A stretch of 64,000 bases of DNA from Macrostomum lignano (lineage: Eukaryota): contig NIVC01002387.1 in the NCBI GenBank assembly GCA_002269645.1, positions 80,872 to 144,871 on the forward strand, read 5' to 3'. The notes beneath the pieces were generated by a model. That model saw only the letters and a list, made by a program, of their open reading frames with translations, did no database searches and was not told the origin of the DNA. Position 1 is the first letter of the stretch, and every line of letters starts with the position of its first letter. The position numbers were made by a program, and so were the translations under genes. Below, one piece after another: positions 46,875-63,001 of the stretch.

Positions 46875-49800
46875 GAGGAACCCCAGCCTCAGGCCAGCGG
46901 CAGTAGCGAACCCGCTGTTCAGGCAGCTCAGGCCACAGAAAATGACACTGAAGAAGTGCAGCCTCGTCATCCTCAGCCTCAGCAGCCGCCGCCGCCGCAG
47001 CAGCAGCAGCAGCAGCAGCAGGTGCTGCCTCACAGCGATAGCCGAGTCGGCGAGGCGGACACGATCTCCAAGCGAGATTATTACACACTGCGCGACCAGG
47101 GCGCCACTATGCAGCCGACACTGCAGCGGCAGTCAGAGGGAGGCGGCGGCGGCATTCGGCGCCTGGGTTCGGTGAAGATGCGCGAGTGCCTGGTTGTGAT
47201 GCTGGACGGATCGGTTAATTCCTTTGAAGTTGACGTGAGCAATAAAATGCTTTTCTAATTATTCAGTATGCAGTTTTTTAGATTGCCTAATTTAGCAAAA
47301 GAAGTTTCCCAGGAAATTGATCTATTTCCGTTTACCCAATATTTCATTGATGGATTTTTTCTTGCCCTCTTCTTCTTTCTATTCGATCGCAGCCGGCCTC
47401 CAAAGCGCAGGATTTGTTCGACGAGACCTGCAAGTTTCTCTGTCTGCGCGAGAAAGAATACTTCGGCCTGTGCTATCGGGACTCTACGCACATTTTTGTG
47501 AGTTGGGCATTGCTTGTTAACTATATAATAGTACATTTGCTTTGCATCCTGCCGCACACTTTCTGGCGCCTCCCTCCGCTCCCTTTCTTTTAGAGGAAGG
47601 TATCTCCTTTATAGCCTTTCTTGGCGCCACCTTCCCATGCCTTAGCGCCTCCTTCTGCTCCCTTCCTGGTGCCCTATTAGTGTCCGTTTGACGCCCCTTC
47701 CACACCCATCCTGGCGCCGTCTTGTCTGTTTGGCGCCCCCTTCGATACCCACCCTGGCGCCCCCTTGGTGTCTTTTTGGCGCCCCCTTCCATACCCACTC
47801 TGGCAGCCCCTTGGTGTCTTTTTGGCGCCCCCTTCCATACCCACTCTGGCGCCCTCCTGCGCTCCCTCGGGTTTCCAAATCAATTTTTATTTCTCGTTTA
47901 TGCAAAAGTACATAATCTCCCTCTATCTGAGCAAACGGACTGTAAAAAGGAAACGGACAGATCTGGCGGCACTTTCAATGCGATATTTTTGGGAGTTGGT
48001 TCTATAATAGATTGACGAGCGCCATTGGCGGGGAAGGAAAGAAGCAGAGAAACCCTCTCGCCACTGCCCTCTGGTCCCCCTCTTTTGAACTTTTTTCCAT
48101 TCCCCTCTCTCTCCACCGTGATTGCCAATTAACGGGCAAACTCCCCCAAAACTCTGCCTCAAGCCGCCCAATCTCCCCTGATGAGGCCAACCCAGCTGCA
48201 GGTCACGTGACCCCTGACCGCATATATATATGCGGAAATATAAATATTTCCTGGCGTCAGTCTTTCTTCCTTTTTATTCGAGCATTTTTTAAGCCCAGCG
48301 CGAGTACGCTGACTTCCTGGTGGGATTTTTCTGGCCTAATAGAGGTGTGGGATAATTATATTGGCTGTCAGGTGGCGCGGGGCGGGGTCGAAAAAAATTT
48401 GAGTTGATGAGGAATATTATTAATCTGACCGGATATTGGTAGGTGGGATTCGCCCATTGTTTGCCGGGGGTTATTCATTGGCTCGCTGGGATGATTCCCA
48501 GGGCTTCAGATAGCGGGCACTGAGATTTACCACTCTGGGAAATTCCCCCATACACACTGAGATTTACCACTCTGGGAAACTCCCCCATACACTGAGATTT
48601 ACCGCTCTGGGAAATTCCCCCATAAACTGAGATTTACCGCTCTGGGAAACTCCCCCATACACTGAGATTTACCGCTCTGGGAAATTCCCCCATACACTGA
48701 GATTTACCGCTCTGGGAAACTCCCCCATAAACTGAGATTTACCGCTCTGGGAAATTCCCCCATACACTGAGATTTACCGCTCTGAGAAATTCCCCCCATA
48801 CACTGAGATTTACCGCTCTGGGAAATTCCCCCCATACACTGAGATTTACCGCTCTAGAAAATTCCCTCACACACTGAGATTTACCACTCTGGGAAATTCC
48901 CCGATAAACTGAGATTTACCGCTCTGGGAAATTCCCCCACACACTGAGATTTACCACTCTGGGAAAATCCCCCATAAACTGAGATTTACCACTCTGGGAA
49001 ATTCCCCCATACAAACTGAGATTTACCGCTCTGGGAAATTCCCCCATACACTGAGATTTACCACTCTGGGAAATTCCCCGATAAACTGAGATTTACCGCT
49101 CTGGGAAATTCCCCCATACACTGATATTTACCGCTCTGGGAAATTCCCCCATACACTGAGATTTACCGCTCTGGGAAATCCCCCATAAACTGAGATTTAC
49201 CACTCTGGGAAATTCCCCCATAAACTGAGATTTACCGCTCTGGGAAATTCCCCCCATAAACTGAGATTTACCGCTCTGAGAAATTCCCCGATAAACTGAG
49301 ATTTACCACTCTGGGAAATTCCCCCATAAACTGAGATTTACCACTCTGGGAAATTCCCCGATAAACTGAGATTTACCGCTCTGGGAAATTCCCCCATACA
49401 CTGATATTTACCGCTCTGGGAAATTCCCCCATACACTGAGATTTACCGCTCTGGGAAATCCCCCATAAACTGAGATTTACCACTCTGGGAAATTCCCCCA
49501 CACACACTGAGATTTACCGCTCTGGGAAATTCCCCCATACACTGAGATTTACCGCTCTGGGAAATTCCCCCATACACTGAGATTTACCGCTCTGGGAAAT
49601 TCCCCCATACACTGATATTTACCGCTCTGGGAAATTCCCCCATACACACTGAGATTTACCGCTCTGGGAAATTCCCCGATAAACTGAGATTTACCACTCT
49701 GGGAAATTCCCCCATACACTGAGATTTACCGCTCTGGGAAATTCCCCCATACACTGAGATTTACCAGTCTGGGAAATTCCCCCATACACTGAGATTTACC

Positions 49801-52800
49801 GCTCTGGGAAATTCCCCCATACACACTGAGATTTACCTCTGAGAAATTCCCCCACACGGAGATTTGACGCTCTGGGAAATTCCCCCACACATGGAGATTT
49901 ACCAGTCTGGGAAATCCCCCCACGCTGAGGTTTGTAGATTTACAATGAGATTTACAATGAGATTGACACTGAGATTTACCCTCACACACTAGAGCATCTC
50001 CTGGTTGAGATTCGAGAATATTCCTATTAAGATTCGATCGTGAAGCATATCTTCTACAGGGTAAAATATTCAAAGATATACTGACGCTGTCGCACCCAAT
50101 AAAATAATAATTTATTAAAAGCACTTCTTTTGCTTTTCCAATTTGCAGCACTGGCTCTACAATGACAGACGGCTGAACAAGCAGATTGGCAGTAAGCAGC
50201 TCGTCATTTTCTTCTTTTATTATTCAAAACCCATTTTTCTGTTTACGAATGCTTGCAAAATTCCATTGGGACCCACGTGTGTCACCTGGGATTCAGTTTG
50301 GCGCATTTACGGCATCACCGTCAGGATCTTTCCTCTCCGCTGCTAGCATTTTTCCCCTTAATTAGTCCCTGCCTTATCCTACATGACCTGTGTATACACA
50401 GTGTGCGGTCCATGCAGTGGTGGAGCGCACATCTGACCTAGTTAGTGGATGCAGCCCTTCAGTTTAGTAGTTCCTTTATGGATATGGCGGTGCATGCATA
50501 TTCCGCATCCATCACTTTCTAATGCCAAGTTAGACACGCGCACACAGGGCCACGCAATACATGGCTTATTGTGCTTGTGTGCATATGAATACAGGATTAT
50601 AAGCATTAGCGGATATTGACTATTTGACTAATCCATATTAGTTCTATTATTAGCTGACTGTTTTAATTGCAAAATTTAAAAATACATTTAAAGATCTTGT
50701 GCAAGTGCACTAAGCTCTGTCGGATTTTTAATTGGGCATCTTTTAAAAAGTAAAGTTCTGAAATACTGAATTATTTGACCACAGAAGGAATCTAGTTAGT
50801 TAATTAGTTAGTTAGTTAGTTAATTAGTCAGTCAGTTAGTTAGTCAGTCAGTCAGTTAGTTAGTTAGTTAGTTAGTTAGTTAGTTAGTTAGTTAGTTAGT
50901 TAGTTAGTCAGTTAGTTAGTTAGTTAGTTAGTTAGTTAGTTAGTTATTTAGTTAGTTAGTTAGTTAGTTAGTTAGTTAGTTAGTTAGTTAGTTAGTTAGT
51001 TAGTTAGTTAGTTAGTTAGTTAGTTAGTTAGTTAGTTAGTTAGTTAGTTAGTTAGTTAGTTAGTTAGTTAGTTAGTTAGTTAGTTAGCTAGTCAGTTAGT
51101 TAGTTAGTTAGTTAGTTAGTTAGTTAGTTAGTTAGTTAGTTAGTTAGTTAGCTAGTCAGTTAGTTAGTTAGTTAGTTAGTTAGTTAGTTAGTTAGTTGGT
51201 CAGTTAGTTAGTTAGTTAGTTAGTTAGTTAGTTAGTTAGTTAGTTAGTTAGTTAGTTAGTTAGTTAGTTAGTTAGTTAGTTAGTTAGTTAGTTAGTTAGT
51301 TAGTTAGTTAGTTAGTTAGTTAGTTAGTTAGTTAGTTAGTTAGTTAGTTAGTTAGTTAGTTAGTTAGTTAGTTAGTTAGTTAGTTAGTTAGTTAGTTAGT
51401 TAGTTAGTTAGTTAGTTAGTTAGTTAGTTAGTTAGTTAGTTAGTTAGTTAGTTAGTTAGTTAGTTAGTTAGTTAGTTAGTTAGTTAGTTAGTTAGCCGCG
51501 CATGGAATCAAGGATTTTATAACTTCAACAACTGCAAATAGTAAATTTACAGTGCGACATCGGTAGCGAAACTGGTGGCAAAAATTCTCACGCTATCTGA
51601 GTGACTGCACATGTAGAATAGCTTGTATAAGCAAAGAAGAGGCCTGCTTTGCTGATCTATAAGTGTTAGCTTTTCGGCACTGGTGTATGCAATCTGCAAT
51701 TTGTACCCTCGCGCAGCCTCTCCGCCACTTGAATTTCTTACTGTGTGCTCCTAGGCCCACTGTAACTTGAACATATCTCTCATATCCTAGCGGCCCAGCC
51801 AGTTGCTATGCAGTTTCATGCTGAACACTATATTAATTTATGGGATGCAATGTACAAGTTGTCTGCCATCTCAAAGAGTTGAGCCCGACCAGTCTATTTT
51901 AGTCGTATTTTGAATGAATTATCGAGATTGTGATGAATTATCGAGCTTGTGATGAATTATCGAGCTTGTGATGAATTATCGAGCTTGTGATGAATTATCG
52001 AGCTTGTGATGAATTATCGAGCTTGTGATGAATTATCGAGCTTGTGAATTATCGAGCTTGTGAATTATCGAGCTTGTGAATTATCGAGCTTGTGAGTTAT
52101 CGAGCTTGTGAATTATCGAGCTTATGAATTATCGAGCTTGTGATAAATTATCGAGCTTGTGAATTATCGAGCTTGTGAATTATCGAGCTTGTGAATTATC
52201 GAGCTTGTGAATTATGGAGCTTGTGAATTTTCGATGTCTTAAGTGTCAAGCTTATCGAAGTTCAGAGTCCAACAAAAGCAGGCACAATTCCAATAAAAAA
52301 CCATAAACTTCAAAAAGTCGGAATTCGGTGCGGATGCGAAGCCATATTCCGGGAAACCTGCTGCAGCAGATGATGGAGCTGTGGGAAGCTGGGCCCGCAG
52401 CGCATTACGCAAAAACATTTGGCAGGTGTGGATAGGATTCGAAGCAGAATTTCGCCCCCAACCCCTGATTTTCTTCCCTCAAGGATATCCCTATCCGATT
52501 ATTTCATTAGAAAAATCCTCTTGAGTGGGAGCGGGGGCAAATTCTTGGCCTATTCTAAACCGCAATATTGTTGTTGCCATGGTTACTAGGCTGGCGGCGG
52601 TAGGATCGAAAGCAGTAGTAGGTATAGGGGAATCGAATGCCTTCTTACCTGATATTTACTATACCCTTGGCAATGGGGTTTCAAGTTCAGCGATGACGCA
52701 TCATCTGATCCTAATGCGATTTATGCCCAGGATTTGGGGAAATTTTATGTATTTTTCATCTCAATTGCTTAGTCTTCACCTGCCTTAAGCCTTAGAGTTC

Positions 52801-62778: not shown

Positions 62779-63001
62779 GGATCTCCGCGCCGAGACCTTC
62801 TTCCCGGCCGGCTGCCGCTAGAAAACGCGCGCCAATCTTCGCTGGAACTTCGGCGACGATCCGGCGCAGCCGCTGCGCACCTGCCCGGCGGCCGTGGCGC
62901 CCGGCCGGCTGGCGCCCGTTAACCAACGCACCGATAATCGCGCGCCTGGCGCCTACAATTCATCACGACGTAACTGGCCCGGGCCTGGCGCTTGGCCCTG
63001 A
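62779..63001 (+). CDS. Terminal SPRY exon with an in-frame TAG at 62819-62821
   Basis: ccacctgcag|G (phase 2) gives R-DLRAETFFPAGCR*KTRANLRWNFGDDP, matching the SPRY end motif FFPA...FNFG; next stop TGA at 62999. Confidence 0.7.

Follow-up and report, generated by a model that had tools for sequence, protein, structure and literature searches.

A Macrostomum lignano gene that joins a protein 4.1-type FERM domain to DDX1-like SPRY domains

The gene and its exons

We analyzed a 64,000-nucleotide stretch of the Macrostomum lignano genome (contig NIVC01002387.1 of GenBank assembly GCA_002269645.1, positions 80,872 to 144,871 of the forward strand), which is referred to here as the window. Positions 46875-64000 of the window hold the 5' part of a plus-strand gene, the remainder of which lies off the window end, and its exons encode a FERM domain of the protein 4.1 type followed by SPRY domains that resemble the one in DDX1. 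Taking all of our data together, this gene is very probably a cis-spliced paralog within a flatworm family of proteins with one FERM domain and two SPRY domains (FERM+2xSPRY), with its SPRY pair derived from DDX1 and the lesions in its eighth exon introduced during assembly.

The gene model comprises eight exons between 46875 and 63106, whose ag/gt borders were rebuilt from the sequence together with alignments to M. lignano gene models. The junctions are all of the GT-AG type, and the spliced frame is unbroken through exon 7. The exons and the intron between the FERM and SPRY parts are as follows:

Exon 1, 46875..47234, plus strand: N-terminal region with the conserved 'SKRDYYTLRDQG' and the start of FERM_N ('MRECLVVMLDGSVNSFEVD'); 3' phase 0
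Exon 2, 47393..47497, plus strand: FERM_N (PASKAQDLF...CYRDSTHIF); phase 0 at both ends
Exon 3, 50149..50191, plus strand: 43 nt of FERM_N (HWLYNDRRLNKQIG); 3' phase 1
Exon 4, 53678..53910, plus strand: first half of FERM_M; 3' phase 0; 100% identity to NIVC01003118.1
Exon 5, 57272..57693, plus strand: second half of FERM_M and FERM_C, ending in '...HHGFFR'; 3' phase 2; 100% identity to NIVC01003118.1
Exon 6, 59231..59394, plus strand: FA-like stretch (LKSPEKPAKPLIPGTFKRNWNYTGPTRGQ...); 3' phase 1
Intron 6/7, 59395..59858, plus strand: GT..AG, phase 1, filled with a 21-bp minisatellite; position and phase kept in paralog B
Exon 7, 59859..60540, plus strand: linker and most of the first SPRY domain (SPRY1); 3' phase 2
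Exon 8, 62779..63106, plus strand: last strands of SPRY1, an inter-domain stretch, and the first strands of the second SPRY domain (SPRY2); frame runs on

An earlier note on this DNA had described a 'FERM-FA-SPRY' fusion at 46875-63001. The junctions that it named (57693 to 59231, 59394 to 59859, and 60540 to 62779) proved to be exact, ag/gt-flanked, and in phases 2, 1, and 2, whereas the 43-nt FERM exon at 50149-50191 and the second SPRY domain that begins in exon 8 had been overlooked. The end at 63001 does not stand, the TGA there being in a locally shifted frame of a gene that continues for ~13 kb past the window, and with its two SPRY domains and long C-terminal tail, the protein comprises more than the label suggests.

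The 3' part of the gene can be followed on GenBank contig NIVC01003118.1 (L004), which belongs to the same assembly and carries the partial model BOX15_Mlig009396g2. Positions taken from this contig put the next exon ~300 bp past the window end and the last exon ~13 kb past it, and two models, P0006 and P0406, run from exon 8 into the second SPRY domain and then into a tail of ~290 residues. Exon 7 is 100% identical to the UniRef model P0006 (translated) and to NIVC01003118.1 (DNA). As judged from such sequence comparisons, the window is the same locus as NIVC01003118.1 or a near-identical copy of it. The gene is the third M. lignano paralog ('C') of the FERM+2xSPRY family and corresponds to BOX15_Mlig009396g2. 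It has the family order of FERM_N, FERM_M, and FERM_C plus two DDX1-like SPRY domains, with the FERM domain, SPRY1, and the start of SPRY2 in the window and the rest on NIVC01003118.1; it adds FERM exons 1-3 beyond the examined stretch of the Mlig009396g2 contig and is without the 3' part.

Exon 1 opens at an AG acceptor, and no in-frame ATG was found ahead of 'MQPTLQ'; the alignment of the UniRef model P0005 with the window also starts at 46875. At 46851-46880, the acceptor (…CATCCCAG/GAGGAACC) sits right after an in-frame stop, with no in-frame ATG before 'SKRDYYTLRDQG'. In addition, nothing convincing turned up in the window when it was inspected for an upstream ATG exon with similarity to the N-terminal ends of paralogs A and B or of the parasitic-flatworm members. 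Start codons donated by a spliced leader are known in flatworms. The M. lignano spliced leader terminates in ...TTGCATG (PMC8629364), and since it ends in ATG, trans-splicing at 46875 would give an in-frame start (ATG/GAG GAA CCC, i.e., M-E-E-P).

The region of the gene has short GC-rich exons, and long minisatellite arrays fill nearly all of the introns; the arrays yield many long spurious open reading frames (ORFs) on both strands. Across 47665-64000, the arrays consist of a 35-bp unit x40 at 48518-49922, TAGT x176 at 50793-51495, a 24-bp unit x27 at 52899-53558, a 32-bp unit x51 at 53986-55611, a 24-bp unit x30 at 56461-57171, a 21-bp unit x20 at 59397-59824, a 16-bp unit x76 at 60548-61699, and a 20-bp unit x41 at 63183-64000.

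Domains of the protein and its relatives in flatworms

A Pfam search with the spliced product of exons 1-6 recovered complete FERM_N (5e-17), FERM_M (3e-22), and FERM_C (1.5e-21) domains. The best non-flatworm matches to this part are bona fide 4.1 proteins from Lingula, Branchiostoma, fish, and insect (44-47% identity, E ~1e-85), which are named protein 4.1, band 4.1-like, or coracle. By this homology, the FERM domain belongs unambiguously with protein 4.1 and coracle, as the earlier note had proposed, and is less similar to the ERM, talin, PTPN, and FRMD types. The protein 4.1 family (EPB41, EPB41L1-3, and Drosophila coracle) has the closest FERM domain, including the 'HHxFFRL' end, after which the flatworm protein has a stretch that can be aligned with the first half of FA.

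The FA domain that the earlier note placed after FERM fared less well, with no Pfam match at E<=5 in the window product or the family members scanned, whereas a profile alignment with hhalign did detect its N-terminal half (probability 75%, E 2.5e-5, 26 columns, that half alone). After 'HHGFFRL', the window reads 'PGTFKRNWNYTGPTRGQ' where parasitic flatworms have 'F..RKYHY' and canonical FA has 'GSKFRYSGRTQ'. This alignment suggests that the stretch keeps an eroded first half of FA.

Pfam detected no SAB domain (PF04382) in P0006, P0406, P0282, P0281, P0280, P0279, P0276, or P0124. Given that SAB is annotated only in some of the vertebrate 4.1 matches, the lack of SAB is nothing out of the ordinary for 4.1 proteins of invertebrates. 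The 4_1_CTD model (PF05902) had no match in the family members scanned, even at E<=5, and comparison of the C-terminal tail with Lingula 4.1 by BLASTP was not significant. With hhalign, the flatworm tails gave a weak match to canonical 4.1 CTDs at the extreme C-terminus (probability 39%, E 3e-4, 48 columns), where the tail, which lies outside the window, reads '...EEGEDDDLLNDIIYQQTG...' in Macrostomum and 'DEDLNMALLTVTKLDPDISV' in Schistosoma. The two are colinear at the end of the CTD, at weak significance, and this alignment makes homology of the tail end to the 4.1 CTD plausible. The flatworm family thereby differs from canonical 4.1 proteins in having two SPRY domains between FA and tail and no Pfam match to SAB, FA, or CTD.

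The product of exons 7 and 8, with an X at the TAG, matches Pfam SPRY (PF00622) at 6e-11 over model positions 1-119 of 121, and the intact copy, P0006, contains two SPRY stretches (Pfam 1.3e-33). Among solved structures, the one nearest to SPRY1 in sequence is the SPRY domain of DDX1, 4xw3 (E 6e-15), with ryanodine receptor, Ash2L, and RanBP9/10 well below it. SPRY2 matches 4xw3 at E 3e-32 across nearly the entire crystal construct, and the match takes in DDX1's N-terminal 'W-x-N-P-x-D' extension. From a six-sequence alignment, AlphaFold predicted two beta-sandwiches at pLDDT ~55-88 in an otherwise disordered chain; the mean pLDDT of this model is 50, with low confidence outside both SPRY domains. 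Foldseek again returned 4xw3 as the best match of this model (TM 0.78-0.80 normalised to target, 35% identity). Both SPRY domains are DDX1-like by sequence and by predicted fold. The complete DDX1-like SPRY domain of the earlier note is upheld in its model coverage and nearest structure, but its ORF is not intact in the window, where it is interrupted by the TAG at 62819-62821. DDX1 itself carries a single SPRY domain inserted in the helicase core, whereas the flatworm protein has two of them after FERM; DEAD and Helicase_C domains, both present in the true DDX1 matches, were found in none of the FERM+SPRY proteins scanned. SPRY domains are also repeated as interaction modules in ryanodine receptors and in SPRY+ankyrin and SPRY+kinase proteins, but these other multi-SPRY proteins have no FERM domain and far weaker similarity (1e-9 or worse to ryanodine receptor).

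We further compared window exons 1-7 plus exon 8 of NIVC01003118.1 with the ORF of a related species, using a rough Nei-Gojobori estimate of the ratio of nonsynonymous to synonymous substitution rates (dN/dS). The values were 0.22 for FERM, 0.34 for the FA-like stretch and linker, 0.64 for SPRY1, and 0.29 for the start of SPRY2, and are indicative, as synonymous sites are near-saturated and the exons are GC-biased. All segments stay below 1, with SPRY1 the most relaxed.

FERM+2xSPRY proteins are encoded by three M. lignano paralogs, of which A (BOX15_Mlig026758g1, 1098 aa) and B (BOX15_Mlig018785g1, 1137 aa) have full-length GenBank models with FERM_N, FERM_M, FERM_C, and two SPRY domains. We searched 1.84 billion representative proteins exhaustively with HMMER, using P0006 as query; the best 150 matches were inspected, and 16 fell below 1e-30. 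The long ones have FERM and two SPRY domains and come from Echinostoma caproni, Dicrocoelium dendriticum, Clonorchis sinensis, and Schistocephalus solidus, as well as from Mesocestoides corti and Cichlidogyrus casuarinus, with two genes each; Paragonimus kellicotti contributes an SPRY-only fragment. With a profile search, the set grew by a 57-member cluster of Schistosoma species and by Calicophoron daubneyi. Collectively, the family spans Macrostomorpha, Monogenea, Cestoda, and Trematoda, and given this spread over four flatworm classes, it probably arose early in flatworm evolution.

After the flatworm family, the next-best matches are ordinary DDX1 helicases. Among the best 150 matches, those with at least 300 residues before SPRY were scanned for FERM, minus the giant proteins P0209 and P0258, and none outside the flatworm set had it. 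The non-family matches scanned carry kinase, EF-hand, or He_PIG domains, and several with shorter N-termini have La, ankyrin, or helicase domains. Conversely, none of the canonical 4.1 proteins listed in the homology searches contains SPRY. Word-indexed searching with the 594-residue window model missed paralogs A and B (~70-80% identical in FERM), both of which were found with the profile query, so absence from such lists is weak evidence. Among what was searched, the architecture appears to be restricted to flatworms.

The fusion is deposited yet uncharacterised, and partly misnamed. Dozens of entries in GenBank and UniProt are labeled 'FERM domain-containing', 'B30.2/SPRY domain-containing', 'unnamed protein product', 'band 4.1', or 'DDX1', and for the member from Schistosoma bovis the name is 'erythrocyte membrane protein band 4.1'. 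GAA30691.2 from Clonorchis sinensis and KAL3319268.1 from Cichlidogyrus casuarinus are called 'ATP-dependent RNA helicase DDX1 / DEAD box helicase 1, partial'; as they have FERM and two SPRY domains and no helicase domains, these names were apparently transferred from the SPRY match. A full-text literature search for FERM and SPRY with protein 4.1 or Schistosoma returned irrelevant co-mentions only. The earlier note had called the architecture unfamiliar, which is true of the literature we found, where no paper describes the fusion, and not of the databases; likewise, its proviso that the arrangement might prove widespread and already described is correct for several flatworm classes with deposited sequences and incorrect for description in the literature found.

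The deposited flatworm proteins have the same domain order as the window gene, and the intron between FA and SPRY is common to it and Mlig018785g1. As a separate observation, the paralog B locus (NIVC01003199.1, 23402-24061) lacks the intron that splits FERM_M between exons 4 and 5 of the window and has extra introns, within SPRY1 and at 'GFGWQ/GVRANKG', neither of which is present in the window gene. These differences indicate considerable intron gain and loss, though the FA/SPRY intron was kept.

Linkage of the FERM and SPRY exons and the state of exon 8

On present sequence evidence, the FERM and SPRY exons should constitute one coding unit that is cis-spliced into a single mRNA. Exon 7 starts in phase 1, and no Met is encoded either in the exon or in the open frame that extends upstream of it into the intron, which leaves SPRY1 without a translation start of its own. 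As read off the sequence, the ATG of the M. lignano spliced leader, if joined at the exon 7 acceptor, would be in the wrong frame, which is closed ~80 codons on. Automated models join the parts in several combinations, with P0005 covering exons 1-7, P0001 and P0407 running from FERM_C to SPRY, and P0006 covering exons 7-8 plus SPRY2. The FA/SPRY intron interrupts the same codon in phase 1 in the paralog B locus NIVC01003199.1 (L003) and in the window, the junctions reading '...CAG AAA G/gt ... ag/AG GAC GCC' in B and '...AAG AAG G/gt ... ag/AA GAC GCA' in the window. A related species has a 1088-residue FERM+2xSPRY ORF (P0124) with 81% identity to paralog A; this ORF runs without a break along 3.5-kb contigs (L001 and L002) that were assembled from two sequencing runs. 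Since the M. lignano gene has at least twelve introns, these contigs would represent processed mRNA. Three phase-compatible junctions alone would be expected by chance at ~1 in 27, and the strong evidence is that of the homologues rather than that of the phases.

It is very improbable, in light of these data, that the FERM-FA and SPRY exons are two adjacent genes with separate transcripts and that the fused models are prediction artefacts. Such an arrangement would agree with the start of P0406 at exon 7, where this model is flagged partial, and with the lack of a gene call over FERM exons 4-6 of NIVC01003118.1; moreover, ~30% of M. lignano genes undergo trans-splicing (PMC8629364), so that transcripts could in principle begin at internal acceptors. 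It is contradicted by the phase-1, Met-less exon 7 and its Met-less upstream frame, by the out-of-frame position of the spliced-leader ATG read off the sequence, by the preservation of junction position and phase in paralog B, whose full-length model holds both parts, by the continuous ORF on mRNA-sized contigs, and by the identical domain order predicted independently in nine other flatworm genera. An assembly chimera of FERM and SPRY was also considered and rejected: the independent contig NIVC01003118.1 has the same order of exons 4-8, and the paralogs share this order.

The frame of SPRY1 is intact in NIVC01003118.1 and not in the window, where a TAG is followed by more frameshifts. The lesions that bear on the end of the product are as follows:

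TAG, 62819..62821, plus strand: in-frame in SPRY1, arising from a local +1 shift; 'FFPAGCR*KTRANLRWNFGDD' in the window and 'GCARNGANLRW' in the intact copy
TGA, 62999..63001, plus strand: in the same shifted frame as the TAG; not the true end of the coding sequence
Exon 8 donor, 63107..63109, plus strand: GAG-C-GT in the window versus GAG/GT in NIVC01003118.1, so that one extra C breaks the GT donor

Frameshift-aware alignment to P0006 revealed ~ten frame changes within 330 nt of exon 8, and the DNA of this exon differs from NIVC01003118.1 by 10 gap openings and 1 mismatch. The flanks show 5 gaps and 2 mismatches in 980 bp upstream and 5 gaps and 0 mismatches in 894 bp downstream, while exons 4, 5, and 7 and the 154 BLAST-aligned bases of exon 6 show zero differences. 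The exon 8 differences amount to ~11 single-base indels, each adding or removing one C, G, or A within short C/G-rich runs or an A run. In NIVC01003118.1, exon 8 is a single clean frame ('FFPAGCARNGANLRWNFGDDPAQPLRHLPGGPWRPAGLAP...NPRAWRLNHHDVTGPGLALGPDGASAQGRLGFGWQGVRAAKG...GRFYYE') with a GT donor, and the motifs 'NFGDDP', 'WRLNxxD', and 'GWQGxRAxKG' are conserved in paralogs A and B, the related species, trematodes, and cestodes. With ~20 indels versus ~3 substitutions over 2.2 kb, the pattern is that of long-read consensus error and not of gene decay. We consider it likely that the stops and frameshifts of exon 8, indels that the GenBank copy does not have, are homopolymer-length consensus errors of the assembly. 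A non-standard genetic code was rejected as an explanation for the TAG, given that the intact copy differs there by indels and has the conserved reading 'CARNGA'.

Real gene decay is usually dominated by substitutions. Nevertheless, the window copy might be a truly decaying paralog or allele that is losing its 3' half through real mutations, which we regard as unlikely. In favor of such decay, the recently polyploid M. lignano has most of its regions in ~three paralogous copies, between which the differences are reported to be mostly indels (PMC10733133); the automated models P0001 and P0004 also stop at 'NWPGPGAWP*', i.e., in the window's frame, and SPRY1 has the most relaxed dN/dS (0.64). 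What speaks for assembly error instead is the excess of indels over substitutions, with no difference at all across the 1.3 kb of coding sequence of exons 4, 5, and 7 or in aligned exon 6, and the confinement of the indels to short C/G-rich runs and the A run, as is typical of long-read consensus errors; furthermore, the models that stop at the TGA belong to an assembly whose models hold many other frameshifts. Under either reading of exon 8, an intact copy of the gene is present in M. lignano. It is scarcely credible that the protein truly stops at the TAG (62819-62821) or at the TGA (63001) and consists of FERM plus one C-terminally clipped SPRY domain, as the window sequence would have it at face value and as the two models that stop at the TGA suggest. 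In the predicted structure, the TAG maps between the final two strands of SPRY1 (214-220 and 225-229), so a product ending there would miss the last beta-strand (225-229). When the frames of the intact copy are followed past the stops, the three motifs given above prove to be shared by Macrostomum, trematodes, and cestodes, and the exon 8 donor and the downstream SPRY2 and tail exons are present in NIVC01003118.1.

Several points weigh against our interpretation of a single cis-spliced gene of the FERM+2xSPRY family. The start codon of exon 1 was not found. P0406, the GenBank model of the identical locus, is 'partial' and starts exactly at exon 7 despite the FERM exons 4-6 upstream, although this reads as fragmentary annotation. 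Support for the splice from 59394 to 59859 in this paralog is indirect and comes from models and homologues rather than cDNA, and the status of P0124 as a transcript is deduced from its unbroken ORF on an mRNA-sized contig. In addition, the Pfam FA, SAB, and CTD models match no family member (window product and ten members, E<=5), SPRY1 of this paralog evolves comparatively fast by the rough dN/dS of 0.64 (dS being near-saturated), and any function is drawn wholly by analogy with the two parent families.

Surroundings, possible origin, and role of the gene

Elsewhere in the window, minus-strand exons of a Mind bomb-type E3 ligase at 9-2605 encode a Mind bomb SH3 repeat (2e-23), two MIB_HERC2 domains (6e-43), and a ZZ zinc finger, and this gene continues off the 5' end of the window. 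A Ty3/gypsy-type LTR retrotransposon occupies 27444-33740 on the plus strand, with a gag-like ORF that has a weak cold-shock-domain match, a pol split over two ORFs (reverse transcriptase at 28916-30481, RNase H and integrase at 30555-32594), and an ORF with 'APDPPHTS' repeats at 32709-33740. Three single-exon ORFs encode a CNPase-like 2',3'-cyclic nucleotide phosphodiesterase (6543-7304, plus strand, 1e-27), a THAP zinc-finger protein (7774-8406, minus strand, 3.5e-11), and an F-box protein (25208-26284, minus strand, 3e-8). Finally, an 801-codon ORF on the plus strand at 13079-15484 has no Pfam match and contains a long central in-frame (TDRQ)n derived from a 12-bp microsatellite; this could be a genuine gene whose coding repeat has expanded, or a pair of exons that the repeat connects.

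The protein would be composed, in order, of an N-terminal region, a three-lobed FERM domain, an eroded FA-like stretch, a low-complexity linker, the tandem SPRY pair, and the ~290-residue tail. With FERM and SPRY in one coding unit and the SPRY domains resembling that of DDX1, which gives the best match for both of them in sequence and in fold, a reasonable origin is the shuffling of DDX1 exons into a gene of the 4.1 type. We infer that the DDX1 SPRY module was most likely copied into such a gene early in flatworm evolution, that the acquired domain would then have been duplicated in tandem, and that the gene would later have been triplicated in the Macrostomum lineage. The lineage-specific exon shuffling suggested in the earlier note is compatible with this scheme as to flatworm restriction and DDX1 likeness; the arrangement is a novelty neither of this locus nor of one narrow lineage, as there are three M. 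lignano paralogs and further members in Trematoda, Cestoda, and Monogenea.

In animals, proteins of the 4.1/coracle type have an organising role in the membrane skeleton and at septate junctions. By analogy with 4.1 and coracle, the FERM lobes may anchor the protein at the cortex or at cell junctions by binding phosphoinositides and the cytoplasmic tails of membrane proteins. The SPRY pair stands at the position of SAB in vertebrate 4.1 and could offer two protein-binding surfaces that recruit partners other than spectrin-actin, and the tail may retain some CTD-type interactions. A central region filled with SPRY would mean a different partner set for flatworm cortex adaptors. We also put forward, as a tentative and rather doubtful idea, that the phylum is without a canonical protein 4.1 and that FERM+2xSPRY is its sole 4.1/coracle orthologue, the link from membrane proteins to spectrin-actin having been rewired early through replacement of the central region by two DDX1-derived SPRY platforms. 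If so, flatworms would possess a specific cortical adaptor with partners unlike those of 4.1 elsewhere, in free-living models as well as in schistosomes, flukes, and tapeworms.

Our findings also bear on annotation. Several database entries named 'DDX1, partial' are misannotated, and exon 8 of the window, read as assembly error, would be a clear case of long-read indel errors making false stops in a conserved domain. M. lignano is a regeneration model in which RNAi and transgenesis are available, and the occurrence of the family both there and in medically important schistosomes, flukes, and tapeworms makes it tractable and potentially relevant to parasites.

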